NCBI GenBank assembly: GCA_002269645.1 | Contig: NIVC01004379.1 | Location: 1-48,023 of the forward strand | Source of the DNA: Macrostomum lignano | Lineage: Eukaryota | Direction: 5' to 3' | DNA: 48,023 nucleotides | In this document: in pieces, positions 3,001 to 47,500 of the stretch | Layout: each line of letters opens with the position of its first letter | Position numbering within the stretch: the stretch's first letter is position 1 | The notes under the pieces: model-generated | What the model was told of the DNA's origin: nothing | The model's database searches: none | What the model saw: the letters and a program-made list of their open reading frames with translations, nothing else | Position numbers and translations under genes: made by a program

Positions 3001-4365
3001 ATAGGGGCGGATTCTTGTGGTAGGTTAGGGACGGATTCTTGTGGTAGGTTAGGAGCGGATTCTTGTGGTAGGTTAGGACGGATTCTTGTGGTAGGTTAGG
3101 GACGGATTCTTGTGGTGGTTAGGGCAGATTCTTGTGGTAGGTTAGGGGCAGATTCTTGTGGTAGGTTAGGGGCAGATTCTTGTGGTAGGTTAGGGCGGAT
3201 TCTTGTGGCAGATTAGGGCCGGATTGTTGTGGTAGGTTAGGGGCGGATTCTTGTGGTAGGTTAGGGACGGATTCTTGTGGTAGGTTAGGGGCGGATTTCT
3301 GTCGTAGATTAGGAGCGGATTTTGTGGTAGGTTAAGGACGGATTCTTGTGGTAGACTGGGGGCGGTTTCTTGTGGTAGGATAGGGGCGGATTCTTGTGGT
3401 AGATTAGGGGCGGATTGTTGTGGTAGGTTAGGGACGGCTTCTTGTGGTAGACTGGGGGCGGTTTCTTGTGGTAGGATAGGGGCGGATTCTTGTGGTAGAT
3501 TAGGGGCGGATTGTTGTCGTAGGTTAGGGGCGGATTTCTGTCGTAGATTAGGAGCAGATTCTTGTGGTAGGTTAGGTTAGGGGTGGATTTTTGTGGTAGG
3601 TTACGGACGGATTCTTGTGGTAGGTTAGGGACGGAATCTTGTGGTAGGTTAGGGACGAATTCTTGTGGTAGACTGGGCGGTTTCTTATGGTAGGATAGGG
3701 GCGGATTCTTGTGGTAGGTTAGGGACGGATTCTTGTGGTAGGTTAGCGACGGATTATTGTGGTAGGTTAGCGACGGATTCTTGTGGTAGGTTAGCGACGG
3801 ATTCTTGTGGTAGGTTAGGGACGGATTCTTGTGGTAGGTTAGGGACGGATTCTGTGGTAGGTTAGGGACGGATTCTTGTGGTAGGTTAGGGACGGATTCT
3901 TGTGGTAGGTTAGGGACGGATTCTTGTGGTAGGTTAGGGTGGATTCTTGTGGTAGGTTAGGGCGGATTCTTGTGGTAGACTGGGGCGGTTTCTTGTGGTA
4001 GGATAGGGGCGGATTCTTGTGGTAGATTAGGGGCGGATTGTTGTCGTAGGTTAGGGGCGGATTTCTGTCGTAGATTAGGAGCAGATTCTTGTGGTAGGTT
4101 AGGTTAGGGGTGGATTTTGTGGTAGGTTACGGACGGATTCTTGTGGTAGGTTAGGGACGGAATCTTGTGGTAGGTTAGGGACGAATTCTTGTGGTAGACT
4201 GGGGCGGTTTCTTATGGTAGGATAGGGGCGGATTCTTGTGGTAGGTTAGGTACGGATTCTTGTGGTAGGCTGGGGCGGTTTCTTGTGGTAGGTTAGGGGC
4301 GGATTCTTGTGGTAGGTTAGGGACGGATTCTTGTGGTAGGTTAGGGGCGGTTTCTTGGGGCAATG
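1..4365 (+). repeat. ~24-bp G-rich tandem satellite, consensus GGTAGGTTAGGGACGGATTCTTGT, ~175 units, with higher-order variant blocks
   Basis: Direct tandem periodicity; most units carry one TTAGGG; variant units (AGACTGGGGCGGTTTC, GATAGGGGCGG, GATTGTTGTCGTAGG, GATTTCTGTCGTAG) recur in the same order; the array runs off the left edge. Confidence 0.97.
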
Positions 4366-12602: not shown

Positions 12603-15600
12603 ATGTCCTCTTCTAACGAAGAAAGTGATGAGGCCTTGTCGCCCAATGGGGCTGCTGGCCAGGGCCAGCAGGTTTTACAGTTGCAGACAGAGAGTAGCAC
12701 ATCAACGCCACCTGAAGCTGGTGCCTCAAGCCAACAGGCTGCACAGGTTGGAGACACAAGTAGGGATGCGAAACCACCACATGGTATGGCAGAGCAGTCA
12801 GACTTAAGTAAGGTCCTCCAGACTCTAACAATGATCCTAGAGAAAACTTGTGACAGAGAGGCTTCCGCAGCAGCTGAGAAACTTTCAAACTCGAGCCCAA
12901 AGCTACGACCACCACCACCCTTTCAACCCCAAATGAATTTCGAACTATGGGAGACACAGTTTCTGACTTATGTTGAAGCTCATCATGTCCCAACACCTCA
13001 GCAACCAGCTGTCCTATTGTCAATGCTCGCACCTGAGTGCCAAGAATTCATTTTTAACAACTCTCTGCACCGCGAGTCCATTCAAACTGCACTAAAAAGT
13101 CTGAAAGATCGATTCACAGATTCGGGAACAGAACACAAAAGCTACTTAGAGCTTGCGGTTGCCGAACAGTTAAACTCGGAAACAACACAGGAGTTCTTTG
13201 ACAGACTAACAAGACTATCAAAGTCTGCTAATCTTAAAAAACCTACCGCCGAACCCTTGGTGCGAGCTCGGTTTTGCTATGGTCTGAGAGATAAGGGTCT
13301 TGCTGAAAGACTGATCCTCCTGGGTCAAGAAAACCCAACATGGTCTGCTGAAGATTTAGCAAAAAAGGCCAGGGAAATTGCCGGTGTCAAGAAGCTCTTA
13401 TCTAGTGAAGTAACTCCAGTCATCAGAGCTGCCGCCCCTGACAGAACAGCAGAATTAGAAGCCCGAATCCGCGAGCTTGAAAAACTAGTTCAACAGAATC
13501 AGACCACTCAGTCTTCAGATCATAATTCAAAAGATTTTCAGAACTTTCCTTCACAAGTGCCGCCTGTCAATCTGGGACAATCTGGCCAGTACAAGAACAG
13601 TAGTCGTTGGTCTAAATCCCCTAAGCGATGCAATCGGTGCAGCGACCATGACCATTTAACTGCGGACTGCCCGAAACCACCGCCCTCCAATGGGGTAGGG
13701 GCAGGTGGAAGACCAACTGGTATGGCCCCAATGATGGAAATAGGAACCATAACGGTTTGGAAAGGTGGATTTGGCTTTATCCAGCCAAGTCAGATGCCAG
13801 ACTCCCTCTTTTGCCATTATTCCAGCCTTGACAACGAGTTAAAACAGGTTGCAAACAGCCATCAGTTAGTAGGCACAACTGTGCAATTCTTACGCCGAGC
13901 AGATCCTGGTCACAAACATGATAGAGCAGTAGGGGTCTGTCGCTACCAAATGCCTGTCCGATGTGACCAATCCTGGGCGGCCGATACTCCAGTCGAGTCT
14001 AGTATGTTTGTGCAGTTGGGAATTGGAGACAACAAGGTCATCGCTTGCCTTGATTCAGGTTGCAATGCAAGCGTCATGGGCACCAAAGTCAGAGACCAAC
14101 TGATTGCAAACGATCCAATCAACAATACATTTATTCCTGCTAGAAAATACCAAGCTGCAACAGCATTTAATGGTACCTCGACACAGATTCTAGGCACCCT
14201 ACACTGTGAAGTCAAGCTGGGCAAAATATCACAGACTCACGTGTTCCTAGTCACAGAAGGTCAAGTTACAGACGTCCTCTTAGGAATAGACTTTATGAGA
14301 GGTTTTAACGTGAACCTGCTTGTTGCAGATGGTCAGGTAACTGTAGCGGGCGAAGTGGTACCTGTGATTGAAGGCGATCGGGGAGTCTTTCAAGCTCGCA
14401 GAGTCACTGCAGCTTGCAACGTGCAGTTACCCCCCAGATCAGAGACCATGGTGCCAAGCCGAGTCATTGGTGCAGATCCTGGCTCTCCTGGATTCCTGGG
14501 CACCAAGCTCTTTTGTTCTGACTCGGAATTCTTTGTGGCTCATTCTGTGGATAGTGTGAGCAGCACTGGTCATGTCCTGGTACGCCTATTGAATAGTGGC
14601 AACCAGCCGTCCGAAATTGCTGCGGGACAGGAGATCGCCTCCTTTCAAAGCTTAAGAGTTGGTGAGACCATCTCGCACACTGCTCTCACCGAGAAGGACT
14701 TCTCAGTTAGCAGTTCCAAAGATCTGGGAACCAAGCTTGCTAAACTTCCTGACCCTGATCTTGGCACAGCATCTTGGCTAAAGAAGCAGTTCAAACTAGA
14801 AGAGTCCACCCTGTCAGAAACCCAGTTGACAATAACATTAAAACTGTTAAACTATTTCCTCAGTGCGATATCTAAAAGTGACACGGATTTAGGGAAAACA
14901 CACCTTCACGAGATGGCTATTGAGCTCAACGAACCAACCTGCCGACCCATCTCGCAACCCTCAAGACGCACAACACCAGCGCAAAAAGAATTTTTAGATC
15001 GGCACATAAACCAGCTAATTGAACAAGGAGTAATCGAAGAAAGCAACTCAGAATGGGCTTCTCCCATAGTCTTAGTTAGGAAAAAAGACGGCTCGCAGCG
15101 CCTTTGCATTGATTACCGTAGTGTCAACAAAGTCATAAAACCGTGCACCTTTCCGCTGCCTCTAATAGAGGAGTCCTTTGATAGCTTAGCGGGGTCAAAG
15201 GTATTCTCAAGTTTAGATCTTACATCTGCCTACTGGCAGGTAGGTATCCGAGAACAGGACCGTGATCTCACGGCCTTCACATGTCCCCAGGGGACCTATC
15301 GCTGGAAAGTTGTCCCATTCGGGATAAAAACAGCCCCAGCGAACTTTGCCAAGTTGATGCACAAAGTTTTCCGACCTTTATTAATGCGCGTCAGCCTCAT
15401 CTACTTGGACGACATCATTATAAAAGCCAGAGACAATGACGAAATGATCGTCCACCTGGCCCTTGTCCTTTGGCAACTTAAAAAGGCCAATCTAAAAATC
15501 AAGCCATCGAAATGTGAACTTTTTAAGGATCGAGTTCGTTTCTTAGGATTCGTCGTCTCCTCCCAGGGCATAGAAGCAGATCCGACTAAGATCGACGCTG

Positions 15601-17012
15601 TTAGAAACTGGTGCAAGCCAACAGACAAGAGGCAATTACTAGCTTTTCTTGGATTCGCGAATTACTACAGGAAATTTGTAGCTCGATTTTCTGTAATCGC
15701 ATCTCCTCTGTATTCGTTGGCCAAAGGGTCATCAAAATTCTGCTGGCTCGAACATCACGACAGAGCATTTGAAGAGTTGAAGGCCAATTTATGTGCTCCT
15801 CCAGTTCTAGCATATCCTGACCTCAAGCCGTCAGCTGGGCCCTTCATCTTGGACTGTGACTCCTCGCTCGAAGGAGTTGGCGGAGTATTGTCACAAGAAG
15901 GCCCAGATGGACAAGAGCACGTTGTGGCGTACGCGTCCAAGAAATTCACGCACTCCCAGCGGAACTATTGTGCTACTATGCGCGAACTACTTGGCTTGGT
16001 CATTATGTTAGAACACTTCAGAACGTACCTCTTGGACCGCAGTTTTCTGGTGCGTTCCGATGCAGCAGCCTTGCAGTGGCTGCACACCAAAAAACATAGC
16101 ACGGGCATGCTAGCTCAGTGGCTGGCAACCATTGACGTCTACAACTTTAAGGTATGTCAGACACCACTGGAACGACTTGCGGAGTATGACTTCTCAGTGG
16201 AGCATCGTCCTGGCCGTGATCATGTTAACGCGGATATGCTCAGCCGCAACCCCAGGTTTAGGTCAGATCACCATGACTGCCCAACGTGCAGCAAAATCCC
16301 TGCTTTCCAAGACAAATTTAGGAAGTTGGAGGAGCAAAGGTGCCAGGACGAGGATGAGGATACAGACAGCATGCCCGCTGTGCAGCTGAGAACAGCACAA
16401 ATAGACGCTTGCTGCCAGACGGAGCCCCACCAATCAAACCAAGAGCCGAAGTATCCTTCCGAGATTTTGACCAGCCATGAAGGGTCGGATGAGGTCAGAA
16501 GCCATCGGTCGCTTAGCTTGCCTTCGACAGCCCAGGATCCGGACCCGGAGGGAGAAACATCTGAGGATGAGATGTCAGAAAACTCCGAGAATCTATGGGC
16601 TAGAGAAGCTCAAGAATCTAGCACAGATCTCGTGAGATTGATTGAGGCCGTTGAAGGGAAATCTCCAAGACTAACTAAGGTTGAAGTCCAGGACTGCAGT
16701 CGTGAAATTCGAACGCTTTGGGCCATGTTTGACGAACTCGAAGTTGTAAATGGCCTTCTGACTCGCGTCAAACCCGCTAAGCAGGGCCAAGTCAGTCAGC
16801 GACTCATAATCATACCAGAGACAGCAGATGTTGATGAGCTAGTTTCCTGCTATCACAGAGACATTAATCACTGCGGAATCAACAAAACAGTCCGGGCCTT
16901 AAAACAAAGGTTCCAAATCACAAACCTCGAAGTATTCGTGAAGGAATCATTGCTGAATGCGAGGTATGCTGCCGCACTAAGAAGAACAAACGGAAGAATA
17001 AAGAACCATTAG
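12603..17012 (+). CDS. Gag-Pol polyprotein part 1: capsid, CCHC knuckle, cold-shock-like domain, aspartic protease, RT, RNase H, start of the integrase zinc finger
   Basis: CNRCSDHDHLTADC (CX2CX4HX4C, 13629-13670); CSD-like 13740-13943; LDSG protease; YLDD RT; FILDCDSS..GVGGVLSQ and HRPG..H.NAD.LSR RNase H; YHRDINHCG. The true frame shifts at ~16945. Confidence 0.96.
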   Translation: MSSSNEESDEALSPNGAAGQGQQVLQLQTESSTSTPPEAGASSQQAAQVGDTSRDAKPPHGMAEQSDLSKVLQTLTMILEKTCDREASAAAEKLSNSSPKLRPPPPFQPQMNFELWETQFLTYVEAHHVPTPQQPAVLLSMLAPECQEFIFNNSLHRESIQTALKSLKDRFTDSGTEHKSYLELAVAEQLNSETTQEFFDRLTRLSKSANLKKPTAEPLVRARFCYGLRDKGLAERLILLGQENPTWSAEDLAKKAREIAGVKKLLSSEVTPVIRAAAPDRTAELEARIRELEKLVQQNQTTQSSDHNSKDFQNFPSQVPPVNLGQSGQYKNSSRWSKSPKRCNRCSDHDHLTADCPKPPPSNGVGAGGRPTGMAPMMEIGTITVWKGGFGFIQPSQMPDSLFCHYSSLDNELKQVANSHQLVGTTVQFLRRADPGHKHDRAVGVCRYQMPVRCDQSWAADTPVESSMFVQLGIGDNKVIACLDSGCNASVMGTKVRDQLIANDPINNTFIPARKYQAATAFNGTSTQILGTLHCEVKLGKISQTHVFLVTEGQVTDVLLGIDFMRGFNVNLLVADGQVTVAGEVVPVIEGDRGVFQARRVTAACNVQLPPRSETMVPSRVIGADPGSPGFLGTKLFCSDSEFFVAHSVDSVSSTGHVLVRLLNSGNQPSEIAAGQEIASFQSLRVGETISHTALTEKDFSVSSSKDLGTKLAKLPDPDLGTASWLKKQFKLEESTLSETQLTITLKLLNYFLSAISKSDTDLGKTHLHEMAIELNEPTCRPISQPSRRTTPAQKEFLDRHINQLIEQGVIEESNSEWASPIVLVRKKDGSQRLCIDYRSVNKVIKPCTFPLPLIEESFDSLAGSKVFSSLDLTSAYWQVGIREQDRDLTAFTCPQGTYRWKVVPFGIKTAPANFAKLMHKVFRPLLMRVSLIYLDDIIIKARDNDEMIVHLALVLWQLKKANLKIKPSKCELFKDRVRFLGFVVSSQGIEADPTKIDAVRNWCKPTDKRQLLAFLGFANYYRKFVARFSVIASPLYSLAKGSSKFCWLEHHDRAFEELKANLCAPPVLAYPDLKPSAGPFILDCDSSLEGVGGVLSQEGPDGQEHVVAYASKKFTHSQRNYCATMRELLGLVIMLEHFRTYLLDRSFLVRSDAAALQWLHTKKHSTGMLAQWLATIDVYNFKVCQTPLERLAEYDFSVEHRPGRDHVNADMLSRNPRFRSDHHDCPTCSKIPAFQDKFRKLEEQRCQDEDEDTDSMPAVQLRTAQIDACCQTEPHQSNQEPKYPSEILTSHEGSDEVRSHRSLSLPSTAQDPDPEGETSEDEMSENSENLWAREAQESSTDLVRLIEAVEGKSPRLTKVEVQDCSREIRTLWAMFDELEVVNGLLTRVKPAKQGQVSQRLIIIPETADVDELVSCYHRDINHCGINKTVRALKQRFQITNLEVFVKESLLNARYAAALRRTNGRIKNH

Positions 17013-18733
17013 AACCAATTTTATCAGGCTATCCAAATCAAATTGTGCACGTTGACCACGCAGGGCCTTTCCCAGAGCAGGAGGGCAACCGTTACTTGCT
17101 GGTGCTAGTAGATAACTTTTCTGGGTATGTAGAGATCGTGCCTGTCCCAGACGTCTCGGCCGCAACTACCGCCACAGTTATACTAACCGAGTGGATAGTT
17201 CGATATGGCACTATGGAGAAACTTGTTTCGGATAATGGCACGGCCTTCATAAATAAAACGGTAGCGGAGCTCACCAGACTACTTGAAATAGACATGGCAC
17301 GTATCACCGCACACAGGCCGCAATCAAACGGTAAAGCGGAAAGGACCATACAATCAATCAAAGCGCAGATTCGTGCAATTTGCCTTGAAAAAAGAGTCAA
17401 TTGGGTCTATGCAGCTCGTTTGGCCGGTCTTTCAATCCGGACGACTGTGGCCGAATCCACAGGCTGGACCCCAGCCAGGCTCTTTTTCGGTCGGGAACTT
17501 GTGCTGCCTCTAGACCTGCTGTTCAACCCGCCAAGGCACGACAGGTATGATCCAGACTGTTATGCACACAAGCTGCACAAACTATTGGTGGAGGTATCGG
17601 CGATCGCCCGCATGGAGCGAGGTAAGGCCCAACAGAGGCAAAAGCGGAATTATGATCGTAATACCATTCACTCCAACTTCGAAATCGGAGAACTGGTGTG
17701 GGTACTCAACCCCGACCATCGGGGATTAGACTCAGCCGTCTGGTTAGGGCCATACAAAGTAGTTCAAAAGGTTTCTGAGCGAAACTACCGCCTCATTCCC
17801 GAATTCGCTCGCATCAATCCAATCTGCCAAACACCAAATCCGAGTCATAACATCTACAACGTAGACCGAATGAAGCGGTGTATCCGCAAGCAAACGTACC
17901 AAGATATCGCCGACCGGTTCGAACTCAGGGTCCCAGCTCTGATTCCACCTTCGAGATTAGGCCAACTGGATGATCAATCCGAGTCTCGCAGTGACTCCTG
18001 GGGTTCATCGGCCACTACCTGCAGTGAGCCGGAACCAGAAGCTGAAGTTCCCAACACACAGGATGACGAAGCGCCTGATCCACCGCACACATCAGCACCT
18101 GATCCACCACACACACCAGCGCCTGATCCACCGCGCACATTAGCGCCTGATCCACCGCACACATCAGCGCCTGATCCACCACACACATCAGCGCCTGATC
18201 CACCGAACACATCAGCGCCTGATCCACCGCGCACATCAGCGCCTGATCCACCGCATCCACCAGCGCCTGATCCACCGCACACATCAGCGCCTGATCCACC
18301 GCACACATCGTCGCCTGATCGTTTAGCACGAAACCAGTCGCCAAGCTTGCCTAGCGCTTTCGTAGAAGTGGCAGACTCGGGGAATCTGCAACAGGATTAC
18401 CAGGTACCTGAAATTGGTGCAGAAGTGGAAGTACCGCAGAACAACACAGAAGAACAGCTGCCAGAATCTCGAGTCCATGAAAGCAGCACTACCATGCCTG
18501 CAATGGACGGCTTGCGTCCAGAAAGTCCAACGAGTGGCAGCCATTGTATTCAAGAGACACCACCAGCGCAAGATACCGTGGATAGTGATAAAGTGGAAGC
18601 ATTTCCAGCTGGTCCAGTCACTACGCCGATTACGACGACCCGTTCCGGCCGTCTGGTGCGTAAGCCTCAGCGTTTCTTGAACACTATAGTGCGTCTGTGT
18701 TCGAGGAACGGACATTTAAGCAACAGCGCCTAG
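16946..18733 (+). CDS. Gag-Pol polyprotein part 2: integrase (CxxC of the zinc finger, DD35E core, GPY/F module, Pro-rich tail); -1 frame relative to part 1
   Basis: The frame of ORF 17045-18733 extends upstream as IIAECEVCCRTKKNKRKNKEPLEPILSGYPNQIVHVDHAGPF; HVD, SDNG and GKAE give D,D35E; WLGPYKV; terminal TTRSGRLVRKPQRF. Restoring one base gives a single 2043-aa ORF. Confidence 0.94.
   Translation: MIAECEVCCRTKKNKRKNKEPLEPILSGYPNQIVHVDHAGPFPEQEGNRYLLVLVDNFSGYVEIVPVPDVSAATTATVILTEWIVRYGTMEKLVSDNGTAFINKTVAELTRLLEIDMARITAHRPQSNGKAERTIQSIKAQIRAICLEKRVNWVYAARLAGLSIRTTVAESTGWTPARLFFGRELVLPLDLLFNPPRHDRYDPDCYAHKLHKLLVEVSAIARMERGKAQQRQKRNYDRNTIHSNFEIGELVWVLNPDHRGLDSAVWLGPYKVVQKVSERNYRLIPEFARINPICQTPNPSHNIYNVDRMKRCIRKQTYQDIADRFELRVPALIPPSRLGQLDDQSESRSDSWGSSATTCSEPEPEAEVPNTQDDEAPDPPHTSAPDPPHTPAPDPPRTLAPDPPHTSAPDPPHTSAPDPPNTSAPDPPRTSAPDPPHPPAPDPPHTSAPDPPHTSSPDRLARNQSPSLPSAFVEVADSGNLQQDYQVPEIGAEVEVPQNNTEEQLPESRVHESSTTMPAMDGLRPESPTSGSHCIQETPPAQDTVDSDKVEAFPAGPVTTPITTTRSGRLVRKPQRFLNTIVRLCSRNGHLSNSA
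18071..18320 (+). repeat. Coding 24-bp tandem repeat, (APDPPHTS)x~10, in the integrase tail
   Basis: GCGCCTGATCCACCGCACACATCA repeated in frame. Confidence 0.95.
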
Positions 18734-19026: not shown

Positions 19027-20001
19027 TTAGGTTCTTTTCTTTCGTCTTTGGGGGGGGGGTTCTGCAGTTGTAGTTATTAGGGGGGGGGGGATCGGTCTCC
19101 TGCCAGCCACCATCGGCCTCCTGCCGGCTACCATCGGCCTCCTGCTGGCTACCATCGGCCTCCTGCTGGCTACCATCGGCCTCCTGCTGGCTACCATCGG
19201 CCTCCTGCCGGCTACCATCGGCCTCCTGCCGGCTACCATCGGCCTCCTGCCGGCTACCATCGGCCTCCTGCCGGCTACCATCGGCCTCCTGCCGGCCACC
19301 ATCGGCCTCCTGCCGTCTACCATCGGCCTGCTCCTGCCGGCTACCATCGGCCTGCTCCTGCCGGCTACCATCGGCCTCCTGCTGGCTACCATCGGCCTCC
19401 TGCCGGCTACCATCGGCCTCCTGCCGGCTACCATCGGCCTCCTGCCGGCCACCATCGGCCTGCTCCTGCCGGCTATCATCGGCCTGCTCCTGCCGGCTAC
19501 CATCGGCCTGCTCACGCCGGCTACCATCGGCCTGCTCCTGCCGGCTACCATCGGCCTCCTGCCGGCTACCATCGGCCTCCTGCCGGCTACCATCGGCCTC
19601 CTGCCGGCTACCATCGGCCTCCTGCCGGCCACCATCGGCCTCCTGCCGGCTACCATCGGCCTGCTCCTGCCGGCTACCATCGGCCTGCTCCTGCCGGCTA
19701 CCATCGGCCTCCTGCTGGCTACCATCGGCCTCCTGCCGGCTACCATCGGCCTCCTGCCGGCTACCATCGGCCTCCTGCCGGCCACCATCGGCCTGCTCCT
19801 GCCGGCTACCATCGGCCTGCTCCTGCCGGCTACCATCGGCCTGCTCACGCCGGCTACCATCGGCCTGCTCCTGCCGGCTACCATCGGCCTAATGCCGGCT
19901 ACCATCGGCCTCCTTTGGCGTTTCGTTCGCTCGTATGTCTTAATCCACTTTTGATTCCTTCTGACCGTTTGTCTCTCAATTAATTTTTCGCGAATATACA
20001 A
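19027..20001 (-). other. Antisense Arg-rich repeat ORF, (RRPMVAG/RSRPMVAG)n; coding status unproven
   Basis: 324-codon open frame; listed start is TTG, first ATG at 19905; basic unique flanks, C-terminal QRRKKRT. Confidence 0.3.
19090..19915 (+). repeat. 21/24-bp GC-rich tandem array (~37 units) between pol and the 3' LTR
   Basis: CCTCCTGCCGGCTACCATCGG and CCTGCTCCTGCCGGCTACCATCGG units; a higher-order block of ~15 units is duplicated. Confidence 0.96.
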
Positions 20002-21922: not shown

Positions 21923-22532
21923 TTAGGGTGAGCCAAAAGTTTCCGGAATTTTTTAGAATCGAACTTTTAGTTAATTTTTGTCTATGGAAAAGCTTAAAAG
22001 CAGCAACCATCTACTATGCTGTTGGCCAGCCTTATCATCACTCTTTAGCTTAACATTGCTCAGTTTCCCAGACCCTGCCTACTTAAGCCAACAAACGCAT
22101 CCAATGGAACTGCCAAGAACTGAATGGCGAGCAATTCTGCTCAGCCACTTTCATGCGGGACGCAACGCAGCAGAGGCACATCGCAAGTTGTTGCAGCTGA
22201 TGGGCCCACATGCACCCTCCAAGTCGTCGGTGTACGACTGGTTCTCTCGCTTTGCTGAGGAGAACTATGAGCTGAAGGACAAGCCGAGGTCAGGCCGACC
22301 CCCTGCTGCTGATGGCGATGCCGTTCTCCAAGCCCTTGAGGACAATTATCCAGACTACAGCGTGCGCAAGCTGTCAGCCGCTACTGGGGTGTCCTATGGC
22401 ACGGTCCAGCGGAGCCTGCATGCTGCGGACAAGGTGCCAAAGAAGCCAACTCTGGTTGGCTGCCGAAGAGACCACTTTTTTACCATTTTTCGGTTTTGCA
22501 CATGCTAAAAATATGCTCGCTGGACACCCTAA
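21923..22532 (+). mobile_element. Truncated Tc1/mariner (mariner-type) element retaining only the transposase DNA-binding N-terminus
   Basis: TA|TTAGGGTGAGCCAAAAGTTTCCGG resembles mariner TIRs; right end has only the partial inverse CACCCTAA (22525-22532); no DD34D domain. Confidence 0.8.
22104..22508 (+). pseudogene. Mariner transposase N-terminal bipartite HTH fragment
   Basis: MELPRTEWRAILLSHFHAGRNAAEAHRKL...SKSSVYDWFSRF...LKDKPRSGRP...SVRKLSAATGVSYGTVQRSL is a Mos1/Hsmar1-type HTH1-GRPR-HTH2; catalytic domain absent. Confidence 0.85.
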
Positions 22533-24128
22533 CTAGGGCCTATAGTATGACTTAAATTGTACTTACAATTTAAAGGGTCTAGTAAAAATGCACCAAGGAT
22601 TCATTCTCCAAGGTAGCTACATAGCCTATGCCATATCAAGGGGTCATCAAATGTGTGCTGGGGCCTATGAGACATTGCAACAAAAAAGGACCTTTTTGCC
22701 ACTCTGTATTAAAAATGTGCTAGGCCTAGATGGCTATCTTCCATAGCAACTTTTCTTATAGAGGTTTTAAGGACATTTCTGACACTATCTACTCTAATCT
22801 AACATTTGTTAGGCCTATTTAATAATGGCCAAATGGCCAATATTTAATAATTACTAATTGGCCATGACCATGACATGAGTCATGACTATGACAATTGACA
22901 ATATAGCATACCAAACTGAAAGATAAATATATCTAATAATTGTTTTTAAAGTAATAAGTGTTTTGTTTTATGTTTTTTATATACAATTTATGTAATTATA
23001 TTATTGTTATTATTAGGCCTATTCATTACATTTATAAGCCAAATTACTAAGTATTATTATATATAATATATATAGACCTATAATAATATTATGCAAGAAA
23101 CCTTAATGAAGTTTCCTAAATTCACCAAGGAATCTCTTAGATCCTTAAAGGAGCCTCCTAGCTCTTAAAAGACATTTAGGAGTTAGGAGTTAGGACACTT
23201 AAGGATTTAGAAGTTAAGAGTATTCTATAACATAGGCCTCAAGTCCTCCTCATCCTTGAAGCTATTATTGGCCATGGATTAGCTAAGCATGGCAAAAAGG
23301 TAGTAGTCAGTAAATGCAAGATCTAGGTTATAAGGTAGATAGAAAAGAATGCCTAACTCAGTGCCAACAGTTTCTTATGCATTAACTAAGCTTTGTGCAC
23401 TAGTGCATTGTCATGCAAAATGATGACCTTGCAAGGTTCTAGGCACTTATTGGTCAAAACCTATTGCAGATGGTCTTGGATACAATTAGACCAACCTTGG
23501 ATACAATTTAACATTCTAGAATTAGCAAAAAAACCTAGTCTAAGTAAGGAGCTTATTTTCATCCTTGTTAGGCCTAATATCTAGTTATACTTTAACAACT
23601 TTGTTAGAAGGCATATTGGTAATGATAGATTGTATTTCATATTCATATATACTTTTGTTTTGGGCTTGCTAAGCACATTGCCAAAACAAGTGTGTTTTAT
23701 ATTGTGCTGCTAATCTCCTGGTAAACTAGTATAGAATCTAGATTTTGACAATGAAGAAAAGACAATGTCCTAGGCTTAAGGCAAGATAGAAGAAGGTTAG
23801 CAACAGCAACATAGATAGGCCTACCTTAGTAAATATTCAATGTATTAACTGTAACACCCTTTAGAAGATATTTGTGAAAAAAAAAGAAAATTTAACTTTG
23901 AATAATCTTATTTCACAGGAAAAATGCAAAGTTGGGCAAAGCTTCCTATTGTGCAAAAAGCAAGGAAAGAGCCAGTAGAGAAGCCACCTCAAGCAACTTG
24001 TAGTCATGCAACACTAAGCCCACTTAAACAAGCCATAGATTCTGCTAAACAAAAGCTGAGTATAACTAGTATTGATATCTATTCACTCAATCACTCTACC
24101 TAGAGGCAGCTTTTCACTCACTAAGAAT

Positions 24129-24397
24129 GTGGTAAGCTGGGGCGGTTTCTTGTGGTAGGTTAGGGACAGATACTTGTGGTAGGTTAGAGATGGATTCTTG
24201 TGGTAGGCTAGGATGGTTTCTTGTGGTAGGTTAGGGGTGGATTCTTGTGGTAGACTGGGACGGTTTCTTGTGGTAGGCTGGGGCGGATTCTTGTGGTAGG
24301 TTAAGGGCAGTTTCTTGGGGCAATGTGGTAGACAATTGGGTTAGCAACAAATTTTAAAAGTTCAATCACTAATTATATTAGAAATGTTACTGCTTAC
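24129..24397 (+). repeat. Second short copy of the satellite end plus adjacent unique intron sequence (paralog of ~4170-4437)
   Basis: 8 satellite units, then GGGGCAATGTGGTAGAC..GGGTTAGCAAC..TTCAATCACTAATTATATTAGAAATGTTACTGCTTAC, nearly identical to 4358-4437. Confidence 0.92.
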
Positions 24398-25001
24398 TTG
24401 GGCACTATTCAATACCACTTAAGATGTTTTGGACTCTAATAAGAATTTTTAAATCAAAACTGATTTTCATCCATCTGTTTTTTGGTTGTTGCACTATAGC
24501 ACAGGCCAAAAATTCTAAAGTTAGAAATAAATTGATAAATAAATAAATAGTGATTTTTATTCTTCATAGAAATTAACAAAGTTCTATTGAAAAAAAAGAA
24601 AATAAGTATAAATAAATTTTTGTACTTCACCAAACAATACTTTTCTCCATATTCCATAATTAACCACTCTCATACCACTCTCAAGGCCATAGATGCTTTG
24701 GCCTTCATCTTAGCCAATCTAATTTGCCTGATAGCTCTTTAACTAGCTAAAAAACATTAGTGTATTGGTCCTTTAGATCCTTAAGAGCCTTAAGACACAG
24801 AGTTTACATGCCTGCGTACAGTATTGGCGCGCTTGTGTGTGCTCCAGGAGTCAGCTCAGGACTCAGGAGTCTTTTGCCTAATCCTATTTGATGAATGAAT
24901 TTCCATAGTTTTAAAATAAACAGAAAGCATTAAACTTGGGCTTTAATGCATGTTATTTAATCCCGCTTAGCAGCAGTCACTATCCTGTCAATCAAACAAC
25001 A

Positions 25002-27694
25002 ATGCACCGGCCCAGCCTGTCAGCTTGCCAGCTCATTCTTCGCTCATTCGGTCGCAGCGGTGGCAACATTGTTGCCAGCCGCCGGTTCGCTTCATCAATG
25101 AATGTGCGCGATGCCTTGAACTCCGCCATGAGAGAGGAGATCGAGCGCGACCCTAATGTCTTCCTAATGGGCGAAGAGGTCGCACAGTACGAGGGTGCTT
25201 ATAAAGTGTCCAAGGGTCTGTGGAAATTGATGGGAGATAAACGCGTGATTGACACTCCCATCACTGAGATGGGCTTTGCCGGTGAGTGGCAAACTACGAG
25301 TATGTCTATGTCTTTCATCACCTGACTAATCACATTTCTAATCCCTTTAGAAGTCACTTATCAACCAGTCAGCTACCTGAGAAATCCTTCCCTAGCAGCC
25401 TGAGAAATCCCTCCTTAGCAACCTGAGAAATCCTTCCCTAGCAACCTGAGAAATCCCTCCCTAGCAACCTGAGAAACCCCCCCCTAGCAACCTGAGAAAT
25501 CCCTCCCTAGCAACCTGAGAAATCCTTCCCTATCAGCCTGAGAAATCCTTAGCAACCTGAGAAATCCTTCCCTAGCAACTATTGTGTACCTGGTAAATCC
25601 TCCCCTAGAAATCATTTAGAAACTTAAGAAATACTCCCACTAGCAACAATTCAACCCCTGAATAAATGCTTTAGCAACCACTCAGTACCTCGAACCCCTT
25701 TTGGGCCACTCTACATCACTGATTAAAAGTGAAATACTTGTCGCAATCGCCACCTCAGGTCTGGCCGTGGGAGCAGCCATGGCCGGTCTCCGGCCGATCT
25801 GCGAGTTCATGACCTTCAACTTCTCGATGCAGGCCATAGATCACGTGATCAATAGTGCGGCTAAAACCTACTACATGAGCGCCGGCGATGTCAAGGTGCC
25901 AATCGTATTTCGCGGGCCCAACGGAGCCGCTGCCGGTGTGGCGGCCCAGCATTCGCAGGACTTCGCCTCATGGTACTCTCACTGCCCCGGGCTGAAAGTG
26001 AGTCTTTCAATAGCCGCCCTGCTTCTGATTTTGCGTTGTGGTAACTTTTTCCAGCGCCTATAGCAACCGAATTAGACATTATTAGACATTACATCCCTAG
26101 CAACCAGATGTGGCAGCCCTAGCAACTAGATTTAACAGCCTTAGCAACTAGATTTGACATCCTTTGCAACCCTAGTAACCAGATTTGACAGCCCTAGCAA
26201 CCAGATTTATCATCTCTAGCAACCCGATTTGGCATCCCTAGCAACCAAATTTGGATTTCCTAGCAACCAGATTTGGCAGTCCTAGAAATTAGATTTGAGC
26301 GTCCTTAGCAATCCATAGTTCACATCCCTAGCAACCGGATTTTGAATCTCTAGCCTTATATTTAGCATCCCTAGCAACCAGATTTCGAATCTCTAGCCTC
26401 ATATTTATCATCCCTAGCAACCAGATTTGGAATCTTTAGCCTCAAATTTAGCATCCCTAGCAACCAAATTAGGATTTCCTAGCAACCATACGAGTATTTG
26501 GCATTCCTAGCAACTAAATTTAGCATCCTCGGCAATCAAGTTTGGCGTCCCTAGCAACCCGGTTTGACATGACATCCTTAGCAACCAGATTTAGCGCCCC
26601 TAGCAACTATATTTGTCCAACACTGAAAGGTACCTGGTAGCTTTCCAACATCTTGCAAAAATTTCTAGTGCATTTTATTGAGAAACTGACAGGCACGCCC
26701 CATCCTTTGCACTCTTGCGCAGGTCGTGTCCCCGTGGAACAGCGAGGACGCTCGCGGCCTATTGAAGGCCGCCATCCGGGACAACGATCCTGTTGTTTGC
26801 CTCGAAAACGAAATGATGTACGGCGTCAGCTTTGAAGTGTCGCCCGAGTGCGAGTCTAAGGATTTTCTCATTCCCATTGGCAAGGTGACGAGCTTAATTT
26901 TTTTTAACATTTCTCTGTTCTATTTATCTCTAGCATTGTAAGTCATATTCCAGCCTCATTGTGAGTCATATTCCAGCCTCATTGTGAGTCATATTCCAGC
27001 CTCATTGTGAGTCATATTCCAGTCTCATTGTGAGTCATATTCCAGTCTCATTGTGAGTCATATTCCAGTCTCATTATGGCTCATATTCCAGTCTCACTGT
27101 GAGTCATATTCCAGTCTCATTGTGAGTCATATTCCACTCTCATTATGGCTCATATTCCAATCTCATTGTGAGTCATATTCCAGTCTCATTGTGAGTCATT
27201 CCAAGCTCATCATAGCTCATAGTTCAGTGAACTTCGCTGCCAAATCCATCCCAAATCAATCCGAATCCCAAATCCCCCAACCGCAGGCCAAGATAGAAAT
27301 CCCCGGCAACCACATCAGCCTCATCTCGTACGGCAAGTTTGTCGGCCTCTGCGTCGAAGCCGCCGCCGAGCTGGCCAAAGAGGGCATCCAGTGCGAGGTG
27401 CTGAACCTGCGCACCCTCCGGCCACTGGACGAGGAGGCCATCGTGAAGTCGGTGATGAAGACTCACCACGTGGTCACGGTGGAGAGCTGCTGGCCCCAGT
27501 GCGGCATGGGGGCGGAGATCGCGGCCAGAATCATGGAGTCGCAGGCATTCGACTATCTGGACGCTCCGCTGACCAGAATGACCGGGGCGGATGTACCGAT
27601 GCCCTACGCCCAGGCCCTGGAGGCGGCGGCCCTGCCTCAGGTGGCCGACATCGTCCGAGTGGTTCGTCGCACTTTAAATCGCGCGGCCAAGTAA
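25002..27694 (+). CDS. PDHB: Pyruvate dehydrogenase E1 beta subunit, mitochondrial; 4 exons, 362 aa
   Basis: Exons 25002-25281, 25759-25997, 26723-26884, 27287-27694 (1089 nt, GT-AG, phases consistent). Motifs [70 protein letters not shown]; Arg/Ser-rich transit-peptide-like N-terminus. Confidence 0.98.
25375..25580 (+). repeat. 23-bp minisatellite in PDHB intron 1
   Basis: CCCTAGCAACCTGAGAAATCCYT x~8. Confidence 0.92.
26055..26610 (+). repeat. Diverged ~22-bp minisatellite in PDHB intron 2
   Basis: Recurrent CCCTAGCAACCAGATTTGGCAT-like units. Confidence 0.88.
26939..27200 (+). repeat. 23-bp minisatellite in PDHB intron 3
   Basis: TGTGAGTCATATTCCAGTCTCAT x~11. Confidence 0.93.
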
Positions 27695-29267: not shown

Positions 29268-32129
29268 TTAAGAAGCGTTACCTAGAGAGCTCGGACTCTT
29301 CAGCCTGAAGTTCAGCCTCTCTTCAACTTCCTCAATCATGTCCAACTCTTTGTCCATTTTGATACTCAACGATCGCATTCTAAGCAGGCAATGCTTGAGC
29401 TGCTCAGCGTCGCGCGAGAACTTGGCGAACAGGTACAACTCGTAGATGTCGTTAGAGTCCTCTTCAGAACACAGCTCCGAGTACCACTGCGACACGAGCT
29501 CGCCGGACCGTTCTGGGATGAGACACATGCTGAGAACTTTGAGAGCGGCGTCGAAATTGACAAAGTAGGCGAAGTCGAGCAGCAGGTGGCCCGGCAGCTG
29601 GTAGAAGCCGAAAGCCGACTCGTCGAGTTTTCCGGTCACGTGATCGGACAGGAACCCGAAGTCCAGCTTCTCATTAAAGTAGAAGCAGAACTTCCAAGCG
29701 CAGTTGCTAGTCTCCAGCTGATGGAGAACAATTCTTTTGGCATCGTCCACAGACTGGGGATGCTGGAAGTCGATGCTTCTCTTCGCTTGAATGCCTTCGG
29801 AATCTTTTAGCACCTGCCTGGCCGATGACAAACTGCCAAGCTTCAGGTGTAGCAGCACTCTTAGCACCGCTCTAACAGTAGCGGCTGCTCTCTCCGGCAG
29901 AGAGTCGATGTCGCGACTAAGATCTTCGCAGCGCTCACCTGTGCAGCGCGGGTTGCCAATGTCGGCGAGAATTTTAAACAGCATGGGATAAATATCCTGA
30001 TACCGGGCCAGCTGACCCGACTCAAGTTTTTTCGGCCGCTTGAATGGGGTGACGAGTTCGATGAGGCTGAACGGCTGGAACACGAACGGCGACTCCGAGC
30101 CAAGCCGCAGTGGCCGCAGCTGCTCGCTCATGTAGCTCGCCAGAATCGAGCGCACGTCGCGCCGCGCCGCCTGCAGGCAGCGAACGAGGGCTCGCCTGTC
30201 AGCGGCCGAGCCAGTCTTGAAGTACACCCAGGCATCCCGGATGAAGAAGTGCGGCATGCAGTTTGAGGCTCCGTACTCTTCGCTCTCGATGACGAACTGC
30301 TCGAAACGGTGCAGAGCGGCAACGACCAGCCACTCCAGCCTGTCTGCCGTCCATTGCTCCTCGGGAATCTCGCACACCAGATAGAACATGAGCGTCTTCG
30401 AGTGGTAGGACTTCAGCCCTTTAGCAGCCAATACTTGCTTGAATATGTACTTAACAAGCACGAATACCTGGCCCTGGCAGGTGCTCAGCTGTCGAAGAAT
30501 CGCCTTCTCCAACGAAGTGCAACTGATGCGCATTTCCATCACGTCGGTGCATTCCGGTCGCACAGACCGGACGAATTCCACTTCCGGATTAGCCGGAAAT
30601 TCAAATCGCTTTGGCAGCTTTGACAGACTTGTGCGCAGCTCAATCGGGATGCAGCAGCTCGGCCGGAACGAGCAGAAGTCCATCGATGGCCGCACTCCCA
30701 CGCCTATATCCGTCCTGCTGGGCTTGTCGCCGCACACGTCCGGCAGTCTGAGGAAGCCCTCCTCCAGCCTGTAGGTTGGCGCAACCAGACACTTGCAGGA
30801 GCCCTCAACGTGCACCGGATTCCTCTGTTGCACGCTCATGTCAACATCGGAGCTGCTGGCCACGCTTCCGTTCAGGCGCTGCAGGCTGCTGCCCCAGCCA
30901 TCGGCGAAACTTCCTGACGCTTTGCGCTTGTCGAATCGGTCGCGCAGCTCTGAGATGTTGCCCAGCTCAGCCAGGAGGTCCGCCGCCCCAGCCTGGAAGA
31001 CTGCGCGGTGGCTGCTGTAGCCGGAGTCGAGCATAGCGCGATGGAGCTTCAACGAGAACTCTTCAGAGGACAGTTGAACTGCCTGTTCGTTCAGCACCAA
31101 CTCGAACTGGTAGAGTTTGCAAATCTTGCTGGAGTCGCAGCTCGGAGTGCCGTTCAAATTAACGATGAGAATCTGTGCGCAGCTGTGACTTCCGTGAACC
31201 TCCGCGACATCGAGAGCTGTGCGACCCCTTGAATCAGTAGCTTTCGGGTCTAGCTTTCCGGACAGCAGCCTCATCGTTTTGCTGCTGTCATGCGTGGCGG
31301 CTACGTGCAGAGCTGTTCCATGATCACTGCTGCTGCTAATCACATCGTCCATGTTGTCCAGGAGTAGCTGCGCGACCGTGTGATGATCTCGCTGGCAGCT
31401 GTACATCAAAGGAGTGAACCCGTTCTTGTCCCGCGCCTCTAGCATCTGTCTGATCGTTTCCTTGACGCAGTTCGACAGCAAATACTGCGCAATCTCCAGG
31501 TGACCATCGCGACAGGCAAAGTGCAATGCGGTGAGGCCCCTGTACTGCGCGCAGGTCCTGTCCACGCCCGCACCCAGCAGCATCCGCACGATGGTGGCGT
31601 GCCCGGGTCTGGCCGACACGATCAGCGCCGTGGACTTGTTGCTGTTCCTGGCGTTGAGGTCAAGCGAACGCAACTTCAGTAGAGAGGCCACCAGTTTCTC
31701 GTGTCCCCTGCTAGCGGCCATTATCAGGGGGGTTGTGCCGTCCTCCCTGCTGAGGTTGCAGTCGATGCTGGGGTGGTCGATGAGCGCCTGGGCGAGCTTG
31801 ACCTCGCCTTTGCCGACCGCGTCAACCAGCATCGGGCTGCTCATCCCGCCGGGTTCGTCCCGCTTCTGGTTGGGATCGGCCTGCCCGGCCTTGACCATGG
31901 CTTCGAGCTCGGCATAGTTTCTTGCCTGAATCAAATCAGCAACTGAGGACGCGTTCCGTTGCCAAGTGTCGCGTACAAGCCTTCTGTCGCTGCTGACTCG
32001 CCGGAAACGGAGCCGCTTGGACTTGCGGTGCACTGCCAGCCCGATGAGAACTGTCGCCAGAGCGACAGCTGCCAGCGCAAGCGCTAGCAGTTGCGAAATT
32101 TCCAACACCGCCGCTTCAGTTTGTGACAT
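29268..32129 (-). CDS. Transmembrane anchor + ~7-8 ankyrin repeats + Mab-21/cGAS-like nucleotidyltransferase (cGLR) + helical C-terminus; 953 aa from Met at 32129 (ORF open to 32372)
   Basis: TM LLALALAAVALATVLIGLAV followed by HRKSKRLRFRR; ankyrin repeats TTPLIMAASRGH, STALIVSARPGH, LTALHFACRDGH, FTPLMYSCQRDH, TALHVAATHD, RTALDVAEVHG; NTase motif SGSFADG..SDVD (30914-30840); Mab-21 C-domain MRISCTSLEK..LVKYIF..LKSYHSKTLMFYL..W..CMPHFFI. Confidence 0.9.
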   Translation of the reverse strand: MSQTEAAVLEISQLLALALAAVALATVLIGLAVHRKSKRLRFRRVSSDRRLVRDTWQRNASSVADLIQARNYAELEAMVKAGQADPNQKRDEPGGMSSPMLVDAVGKGEVKLAQALIDHPSIDCNLSREDGTTPLIMAASRGHEKLVASLLKLRSLDLNARNSNKSTALIVSARPGHATIVRMLLGAGVDRTCAQYRGLTALHFACRDGHLEIAQYLLSNCVKETIRQMLEARDKNGFTPLMYSCQRDHHTVAQLLLDNMDDVISSSSDHGTALHVAATHDSSKTMRLLSGKLDPKATDSRGRTALDVAEVHGSHSCAQILIVNLNGTPSCDSSKICKLYQFELVLNEQAVQLSSEEFSLKLHRAMLDSGYSSHRAVFQAGAADLLAELGNISELRDRFDKRKASGSFADGWGSSLQRLNGSVASSSDVDMSVQQRNPVHVEGSCKCLVAPTYRLEEGFLRLPDVCGDKPSRTDIGVGVRPSMDFCSFRPSCCIPIELRTSLSKLPKRFEFPANPEVEFVRSVRPECTDVMEMRISCTSLEKAILRQLSTCQGQVFVLVKYIFKQVLAAKGLKSYHSKTLMFYLVCEIPEEQWTADRLEWLVVAALHRFEQFVIESEEYGASNCMPHFFIRDAWVYFKTGSAADRRALVRCLQAARRDVRSILASYMSEQLRPLRLGSESPFVFQPFSLIELVTPFKRPKKLESGQLARYQDIYPMLFKILADIGNPRCTGERCEDLSRDIDSLPERAAATVRAVLRVLLHLKLGSLSSARQVLKDSEGIQAKRSIDFQHPQSVDDAKRIVLHQLETSNCAWKFCFYFNEKLDFGFLSDHVTGKLDESAFGFYQLPGHLLLDFAYFVNFDAALKVLSMCLIPERSGELVSQWYSELCSEEDSNDIYELYLFAKFSRDAEQLKHCLLRMRSLSIKMDKELDMIEEVEERLNFRLKSPSSLGNAS

Positions 32130-33929
32130 GATGTGACGCTGGAACTGGGACCCCTTCCCGTGGATTTGCCCTGGACAGTCGCCCCCCCCCCGCATGTGTC
32201 TTTTGTACCCTGGCCCCGTCCCAACCGCCTGTGTTGATATAGTAGGTACTATAAATATGTCGATCATTGCCAGAAATAGCAGTCGAGAATAGCCGATAAT
32301 TGCGTCTATAGAAACTGTAACAGTAGGAACTAAAAAACTGTATAAGGTACAACTGCAGTTGTCATCAATCATTGCTAATTATTTCGCATTTCTTGCCGGA
32401 ACAGCAAATCACAAGCAGCATGTTATCAGTGCAGGCACCTCTAGGAAAGCCCGGCCTTGATAGCAAGATAGCAAAACGAGACAGACGAGGCTTAATGAGG
32501 GGAGTGGGAATCTTCTGGGCACTGACAAGCCCAAAAGCAGTTATTTGTGCATAAATAAAAAGCTAGGATAAATAGAAGTGTAACTGCACTAGGTCGTGAT
32601 AAAAAATCGATGCACAGATTGAAGGATAAATGCAAAATCACTAAGAATGAATCGAACATCTTCTCCCCTGCAGCATTGACGCAGAGACAAATTGCAGACG
32701 CATTTTTTGCTACGCCACCTGCTATTCCTCCTTCTGCCACTGCTGGGACACCAATTTCATGAAAGTTGCAATTCAGACCAAGCTGAAGCAGGCAATCTCT
32801 GAATGCGATGCTGATTTCAATGGATTTGCCAGCGAAGCCGATTCTTGACGCGAACCTGGGAGTCTCCCAGTTCCTACCCAATTGACATTTTACATGTAAG
32901 AGTGAAAAATAAAGGGAAAATTGAAAAGATTCCTAAGACGCTCATCTGCATGTGAGAAGTGGCTTTTCAGGCTTCGCCTCGGAGATTCTGCATAGACAGT
33001 CTCCTCGTTTCAGTAGGTTATTATACATTAGATGAGGTAATTGAGTGTGTGTGGCGACCATCCAGTCCTTGGACTGAACAGCCGTACGCAGCCTTCAGAT
33101 GCGCCGCGTTGGTTGCACATGTGCCCACTAGGGCAGGTACTCGTATAATTCAGTATTAATTAATCACTTCAACTAAAATCCACTTGTCGTATATTAATTA
33201 AGTATAAAAGAGTATTTTTTGTTTCTAGTTTCGGTACTTTAAAAATCCTGGATCAGCCACGTGTTTATTTATGATTAAAAAGGTATTTGGACCATTCGGT
33301 AAAACATACTACCGTTTAGTAGTAGCCTCAAACGCGTGTTAACTTGTTTTTTTCTATCTTCGTGCAGTGTGTATGTGACGTTTTCAGTGAAGTTTCATAG
33401 CATACCCATTCAGACTTGTGGGCACCGATGCATGTGCAGTACAAGGACTACAAAAGTAGAAGGACGCAGCTATGTCTATGTTAATTTATTATACTACGTT
33501 AAATTGCACATGTCCTGTGCCTAAAAATCATGAAAACCGCTCAGCTGATTGGTTTTATGGATCTTTAAAACCAAAGATTGGAGCTGTGTCATGCACTTTT
33601 ATGATTTTTAGGTACAGGAAGTGTATTTTTGTAGTGTATTAGTGTAGTGTAGTGTAATCTCTGTAGTGTATTTTTCAGCGAAAAGTGGCCTTCAAAGCTT
33701 TTTCCATGAAACGTGAGTGTCGCGTCCTGTATATACGTTGCTTTAGTTGTCCTTGGTACAGTACGGTATCATGACTAAATATTTTCTAAGCGATATGAAA
33801 ATAAAACTATGATGAATATCGATCGATTGATGTCTGACAGAGCCATCTGTCGATCAAGTTTAAGCAGCATCCTGATTGATGTGTCAGGCGAATGCAGCCG
33901 ATTTTTTCAATACCGCCGCCATTCCTTGT

Positions 33930-41326: not shown

Positions 41327-47500
<6,174 letters not shown>

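Follow-up and report, generated by a model that had tools for sequence, protein, structure and literature searches.

We analysed a stretch of 48,023 nucleotides from the flatworm Macrostomum lignano (GenBank assembly GCA_002269645.1, contig NIVC01004379.1, positions 1 to 48,023; hereafter the window), whose minus strand carries a gene for a protein containing ankyrin repeats, a predicted N-terminal membrane anchor and a predicted cGAS-type nucleotidyltransferase (NTase) domain (Table 1). A single open reading frame (ORF) runs from 32372 to 29268 without interruption and gives a 953-residue product from the ATG at 32129. The only other ORF of comparable length in the window is the pol frame of a retrotransposon. 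The G+C content at third codon positions (GC3) is 0.5–0.93 in every 30-codon block from around 20 codons before this ATG to the end of the ORF, and 0.30–0.47 further upstream. Because GC3 falls only upstream of there, coding starts at one of two in-frame ATGs, 32129 or 32195, and the hydrophobic N-terminal segment lies inside the product with either start. The ATG at 32129 has an A at −3 and stands 9 nt after a pyrimidine-rich, acceptor-like site (...ttccag). A G10 homopolymer (32181–32190), 52 nt upstream of this ATG, lies within the in-frame upstream extension, and an error in its length would alter whether the ATG at 32195 is in frame. The uninterrupted frame proposed by the first-pass annotation is confirmed, with coding-type GC3 throughout, including the predicted membrane segment. 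The locus is an intact, previously unannotated flatworm gene with a genuine ORF.

Table 1. Features of the ankyrin-NTase gene and of the rest of the window.
Feature	Position	Strand	Evidence
Coding sequence, single exon, 953 residues plus stop	29268..32129	-	ORF reading and GC3
Alternative in-frame ATG, 22 codons upstream	32195-32193	-	Sequence reading
Predicted transmembrane signal-anchor, residues 11-33	32031..32099	-	Kyte-Doolittle; no positive charge in the n-region
Juxtamembrane basic cluster HRKSKRLRFRR, residues 34-44	31998..32030	-	Positive-inside rule, predicting a cytosolic C-terminus
Ankyrin-repeat array, 7 repeats, residues ~96-325	31155..31844	-	Pfam Ank_2/Ank/Ank_4/Ank_5; PDB
Mab21/cGAS-type NTase core, residues ~353-545	30495..31073	-	Foldseek to cGAS/cGLR; hhalign to canonical Mab-21
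G406-S407 activation-loop motif, context GSFADGWG	30909..30914	-	22/22; aligned to canonical Mab-21 GS
D428-V-D430, putative catalytic acids 1 and 2, strand beta-2	30840..30848	-	D428 22/22, D430 21/22; model strand E99-105
D484, putative third catalytic acid, context RPSMDF	30678..30680	-	21/22; aligned with invariant canonical Mab-21 D; model strand E153-162
Residues 459 and 518 (Phe and Glu for family His)	30753-30755 and 30576-30578	-	Family alignment
Mab-21 C-terminal helical (HhH/H2TH-like) domain, residues ~546-690	30060..30494	-	PF20266; PDB profile matches to Sp-cGLR1 and cGAS
Family-specific C-terminal domain, residues 701-953	29271..30029	-	AlphaFold2; conserved in family
AATAAA, candidate polyadenylation signal, ~250 nt past the stop codon	29014-29019	-	Read from sequence
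Pyruvate dehydrogenase E1 beta (PDHB), three exons	24936-27694	+	97% identity to M. lignano protein (last exon)
Ty3/gypsy-type retrotransposon, two long open frames	12603-18733	+	Domain content
ORF with Mos1/mariner transposase helix-turn-helix domain, DNA-transposon fragment	21978-22508	+	HTH_48, E = 1.4e-11
ORF whose C-terminal 100 residues match a Tyr/Ser-Thr kinase domain	42582-43598	-	Domain match
324-residue ORF, wholly a 21-bp tandem repeat	19027-20001	-	Pfam 'grass antifreeze beta roll' match

The protein begins with an acidic stretch of ten residues followed by a 23-residue hydrophobic core (ISQLLALALAAVALATVLIGLAV, mean Kyte-Doolittle hydropathy of 2.7 over 19 residues) and then the basic cluster, which lies in a segment (residues 34–100) with an isoelectric point (pI) of 11.1. 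No segment in the rest of the protein exceeds a Kyte-Doolittle value of 1.55. This arrangement, noticed already in the first reading of the sequence, fits a signal-anchor that would place the C-terminus in the cytosol by the positive-inside rule, and this is the only topology with which the ankyrin and NTase domains are compatible. A cleavable signal peptide was ruled out by the length of the hydrophobic core, the acidic n-region and the basic cluster downstream.

Membrane anchoring could nevertheless be a property of the DNA and not of the mature protein. The gene might encode an ordinary soluble member of the ankyrin-fused cGAS-like receptors (cGLRs), in which a downstream start or trans-splice site leaves the hydrophobic N-terminus outside the product, or it might be a young, unexpressed duplicate. 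Spliced-leader trans-splicing is common in M. lignano, which counts for such a product, as does the absence of a transmembrane segment upstream of the ankyrins in 103 of the 104 family sequences. The gene is also missing from the M. lignano protein sets searched, and it has no introns, as opposed to two in the paralogue P0004. However, GC3 stays at 0.63–0.73 across the transmembrane codons, falling only further upstream, and the A at −3 and the acceptor-like site both favor the ATG at 32129. The next methionine is residue 78, within the possible degenerate ankyrin cap described below, and the 953-codon ORF keeps every family-invariant residue, which speaks against decay. On balance, we consider a soluble or silent gene unlikely. 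The one family sequence with a transmembrane segment before its ankyrins, P0009, is of another kind, with a signal peptide, a Ser/Thr-rich stalk, the transmembrane segment and a CCGLCCCPCC cluster preceding the repeats. It would represent a second, different way to membrane tethering, although its gene or transcript model may be chimeric.

Downstream of the anchor lies an array of tandem 33-residue ankyrin repeats. Every Pfam ankyrin model matches residues ~100–325 (Ank_2 at 121 bits, Ank at 88 bits) and the array matches ankyrin-1 in the PDB by sequence (E = 4.7e-63). Counting by eye gave seven repeats and a possible degenerate cap at residues 60–95, in line with the seven to eight estimated at first.

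Identification of the NTase core required structure and profile comparisons. The first-pass annotation had described a Mab-21 protein, and Pfam bore this out for the C-terminal half only, where Mab-21_C (PF20266) matches residues 551–633 with 26.4 bits, above its curated cutoff of 24.1. The Pfam model of the NTase core (PF03281) gave no match at E ≤ 10, either to the window protein or to 21 relatives, and so the core was established through hhalign and Foldseek. We aligned the module of the window protein with 21 others from M. lignano (n = 22; 24–32% identity to the window sequence) and compared this family alignment to a canonical Mab-21 alignment, from a reference set in which eight of ten scanned proteins carry both PF03281 and PF20266. 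The two aligned over 310 columns, covering module residues 72–395 (hhalign probability 99.9, E = 5.6e-31), with the GS, the SDxD and the third Asp (RPxxD in the family, xxxxD-V-A in canonical Mab-21) sharing columns. Searched against the PDB, the family profile found Sp-cGLR1 (2.3e-8), many cGAS entries (~1e-6) and MAB21L1, while a single-sequence search over the Mab-21_C stretch found Sp-cGLR1 only (8GJY, E = 1.9e-4). A possible relation to bacterial CD-NTases of cyclic-oligonucleotide-based anti-phage signaling systems was explored through PADLOC, which returned ankyrin-based matches only.

AlphaFold2, run with the family alignment, produced a model with a mean predicted local distance difference test (pLDDT) score of 86 and a predicted TM-score (pTM) of 0.88. 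The model places the GS where a strand meets a helix, Asp428 and Asp430 on the next strand and Asp484 on a further one, the arrangement of Pol-beta NTases. Only cGAS, Cv-cGLR1 or MB21D2 entries occur among the first 39 Foldseek matches in the PDB, with MiD51 and Sp-cGLR1 next (E = 2e-7 to 8e-5, target-normalized TM-score of 0.50–0.59, ~350–400 aligned columns), which upholds the cGAS-type assignment made from the letters of the sequence.

The active-site residues follow the published cGLR motif, h[QT]GS-X8-20-[DE]h[DE]h-X50-90-h[DE]h (Li et al. 2023, PMC9980059). The motif matches once in the protein, as A-S-G406-S407, X20, D428-V-D430-M, X51, M-D484-F; the residue before the GS is Ser, where the motif has Gln or Thr and the relatives have Val, Thr or Cys. 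The final selection pattern of the same study (G[S/G] and [E/D]h[E/D] X50-90 [E/D]; PMC9980059) is present in full, and the protein shows all three of the sequence and structure features by which Li et al. define a cGLR, namely the motif, homology over core and helix bundle, and the fold. The GS and DVD lie exactly at the positions first given for them. For the third acid two candidates had been named, TDIG and MDFC, and both the motif and the canonical alignment place it at Asp484 of MDFC, whereas the Asp of TDIG is not conserved. Similarly, G412-S413 was rejected as the activation-loop GS, since G406-S407 aligns with the canonical GS and relatives have Gly, Ala or Ser at 413.

Within the family alignment Gly406, Ser407, Gly411 and Asp428 are present in 22/22 sequences, and Asp430 and Asp484 in 21/22, both being lost from the same single sequence, likely a dead paralogue. 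The conserved His440, Cys445, Cys447 and Cys492 are kept in the window protein. At positions 459 and 518, where 20/22 sequences have His at each, the window paralogue carries Phe and Glu instead, which may mean that one metal or structural site is gone, the pair possibly having been lost together. By profile comparison and modelling, the protein has a Mab21/cGAS fold with the complete G-S / D-x-D / D motif needed for nucleotide second-messenger synthesis. Retention of the catalytic residues across paralogues at 24–32% identity argues for selection on catalysis and for an enzymatic family.

The presence of MiD51 among the significant Foldseek matches brings in a different possibility, that the protein is a non-catalytic, membrane-anchored scaffold with a Mab21 fold, like MiD49/MiD51, with the ankyrins and the tail bringing partners to the surface of an organelle. 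MiD51 has the same layout of an N-terminal transmembrane segment and a cytosolic Mab21-fold domain, and a scaffold would also account for the two lost histidines and for the screened relatives described below, which are not marked as active (PMC9980059). In opposition to this, the complete GS/DxD/D set is kept both here and in 21/22 of the aligned sequences despite their divergence, and cGAS and cGLR structures outmatch MiD51 in Foldseek. Although the fold matches, a lack of catalytic acids, which characterizes the MiD49/51 group, was not what we found, and a scaffold role seems improbable to us.

The region beyond Mab-21_C forms a further domain. The first-pass annotation had noted a helical tail of ~200 residues; the tail is indeed mostly helical, but is ~250 residues long (~700–953) and combines helical hairpins with a small sheet of three strands. 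Predicted alone by AlphaFold2 it reached a pLDDT of 88 and a pTM of 0.87, and the high pTM of the full-module model suggests that it packs against the Mab21 domain. The tail is conserved across the family, with Trp812, Asn858 and Asp894 invariant. It has no Pfam match and no PDB sequence match, and no structure in the PDB or in BFVD (predicted viral structures) matched at E < 0.001, the best being vaguely TPR-like at E ≥ 0.2. Our literature search found no earlier report that the tail of this family is structurally unmatched. The tail is a confidently predicted, family-specific domain and a candidate regulatory or effector module.

Next, we explored the relatives of the gene. An exhaustive HMMER search with residues 330–953 recovered 112 cluster representatives, of which 76 fall below 1e-10, so that the paralogues looked for do exist; word-indexed homologue searches with the same residues or with the family alignment gave no match, their word prefilter being swamped. 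The HMMER matches mostly show 28–39% pairwise identity, and many span the whole 600-residue C-terminal module. All 17 of the 76 representatives that were looked up are from M. lignano (two have a MetaClust identifier only), and UniProt labels the relatives 'Mab-21-like HhH/H2TH-like domain-containing' or 'ANK_REP_REGION'. Three weaker matches that were looked up share Mab-21_C only; the annelid Lamellibrachia is the source of one, and the remaining two are ENA records. The family module comprises an NTase core (GSxxEGWG...SDIDv...RPxxD), Mab-21_C and the family-specific tail, and ankyrin arrays are nearly universal. Two M. lignano sequences recall OAS2/OAS3, P0001 with a tandem pair of complete modules and P0006 with an additional copy that is only partial; their gene or transcript models could be chimeric.

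The fusion of Mab-21 to repeat domains, correctly anticipated by the first reading, has been reported. Around 13% of cGLRs carry extra domains, ankyrin repeats among them, and M. lignano members of the same ankyrin-fused family were classed as cGLRs (Li et al. 2023, PMC9980059). Five of these (PAA86972.1, PAA45980.1, PAA57558.1, PAA93208.1 and PAA68676.1) were samples 89–93 of an activity screen, with the ankyrins removed, in which a nucleic-acid pool of pathogen-associated molecular patterns was used (PMC9980059). The first-pass annotation had presented the combination of transmembrane segment, ankyrins and cGLR as unfamiliar. Since the ankyrin-cGLR fusion and this Macrostomum clade are already published, novelty is apparently limited to the predicted anchor and the unmatched tail. 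Our literature search for a transmembrane-anchored cGLR, or for work on cGAS or STING in Macrostomum, found nothing relevant, and the anchored architecture is apparently the new part, one that hinges on transcript evidence.

These published data also bear on the nature of the ligand. A conventional cGLR would bind dsRNA or dsDNA through its Mab21 domain, with the ankyrins and the anchor setting location only, and every cGLR whose activating ligand has been identified does sense dsDNA or dsRNA (PMC9980059). The Mab21 domain of the window protein has a pI of 8.25 and its juxtamembrane segment is strongly basic. Yet 8.25 falls under the pI of >8.5 of nucleic-acid-sensing cGLRs (Li et al. 2023, PMC9980059), the pI is 6.5 for the C-terminal module as a whole and 5.6 for the tail, and none of the screened relatives is marked as active with the nucleic-acid pool. 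Nucleic-acid sensing of the conventional kind appears quite doubtful here. The weak charge, the near-universal ankyrins and the lack of an activity mark for the ankyrin-stripped relatives are compatible with, and do not prove, the non-nucleic-acid trigger or autoinhibition suggested in the first reading.

We propose, with slightly better than even confidence, that the gene is an intact, highly divergent paralogue of the Macrostomum-specific ankyrin-cGLR family that works as follows. The single N-terminal signal-anchor, with its basic cytosolic flank, would tether the protein to a membrane and leave the other domains in the cytosol. The ankyrin array, perhaps with the tail, would bind a protein or other non-nucleic-acid ligand, or hold the enzyme off, and ligand binding would reorder the GS activation loop. 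The enzyme could then condense nucleoside triphosphates to a cyclic di- or oligonucleotide that would signal to a putative receptor in this animal. Several observations weigh against this proposal. For samples 89–93 the 'Note' entry by which the 15 active enzymes are marked is blank (PMC9980059), the window protein has lost the two family histidines and PF03281 fails to match. The predicted signal-anchor is unique to this gene among the 104 family sequences, and the predicted transmembrane segment would be lost if the mRNA start or a trans-splice site lay downstream. In an exact-sequence lookup the window protein was not on record, nor does it occur in the M. lignano protein sets searched, and we saw no gene for STING or another cyclic-nucleotide receptor in the window.

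A bolder version would make the protein the first cGAS-like enzyme held to a membrane by a transmembrane helix of its own, whose ankyrins and unmatched tail sense a non-nucleic-acid membrane cue and feed a STING-independent second-messenger pathway. It would belong to an expansion of >75 sequence clusters in a free-living flatworm. Most other sequenced species of the phylum lack cGLRs, and they are listed with no cGLR or STING genes; M. lignano itself is not in the per-species table of cGLR and STING counts (PMC9980059). We offer this version as a speculation with little likelihood of holding in full. Of the predicted cGLRs, which number in the thousands, most are orphans. If a clade in which ankyrins are the rule, and which has a membrane-bound member, proved active, it would provide a tractable place to study protein-ligand or location-gated cyclic-nucleotide immunity, M. 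lignano being a model open to RNA interference and transgenesis.

The gene is convergent with PDHB, which has exons at ~24.9–27.7 kb on the plus strand; a 23-bp tandem array (26934–27199) runs into the ORF of the last PDHB exon. No STING, TIR, death-domain or second Mab21 gene was found within the window, the remainder of which is rich in repeats and transposons. A G-rich satellite of 4.3 kb (17–4357) comprises ~182 copies of a 24-bp unit (ATTCTTGTGGTAGGTTAGGGGCGG) with a GC skew of +0.63 and a TTAGGG-like core, and a short related array lies at 24128–24317. The Ty3/gypsy-type element encodes aspartyl protease, reverse transcriptase and RNase H in its first open frame (1469 residues) and an integrase core in its second (562 residues), holds a 24-bp tandem array at 18070–18320 and may be recently active. 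Much of the kinase-like ORF is repeat-derived, since it overlaps a (GTCT)n microsatellite (42926–43554). The 'grass antifreeze beta roll' match is almost certainly a repeat artefact, and the ORF, wholly a 21-bp repeat, almost certainly no gene.

Comparison with known systems indicates what the proposed membrane-anchored paralogue shares and where it departs. The whole 600-residue module is common to the M. lignano ankyrin-fused cGLRs (e.g. PAA75531.1, PAA66982.1), most of which have N-terminal ankyrins, whereas the window gene differs by its predicted signal-anchor, Phe459/Glu518, lack of introns and low identity to them (24–32% in the 22-sequence alignment, up to ~36% in pairwise matches). 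With cGAS, Cv-cGLR1 and Sp-cGLR1 (PDB 4K97, 8GJW, 8GJY) it has in common the bilobed Mab21 fold and GS/DxD/D, at ~14% identity, but it has an extra Cys/His-rich insert after the DxD and before the third Asp, adds the predicted transmembrane segment, the ankyrins and the 250-residue tail, and its module is not strongly basic. MiD49/MiD51 (PDB 4NXT, 4OAF; MiD51 Foldseek E = 1.5e-5 to 8e-5, target-normalized TM-score of 0.52–0.56) have an N-terminal transmembrane anchor followed by a cytosolic Mab21-fold domain, as predicted here. They are anchored on the mitochondrial outer membrane, bind nucleotide without catalysis, and lack the catalytic acids, ankyrins and tail. Membrane-targeted NTase sensors are also known, in prenylated OAS1 p46 and in human cGAS, which is held at the plasma membrane through an N-terminal phosphoinositide-binding segment. 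The common idea is an NTase-fold sensor on a membrane, which limits what it sees; OAS1 p46 and membrane-bound cGAS, related to the window protein only in fold, use lipid modification or lipid binding in place of an integral transmembrane helix.

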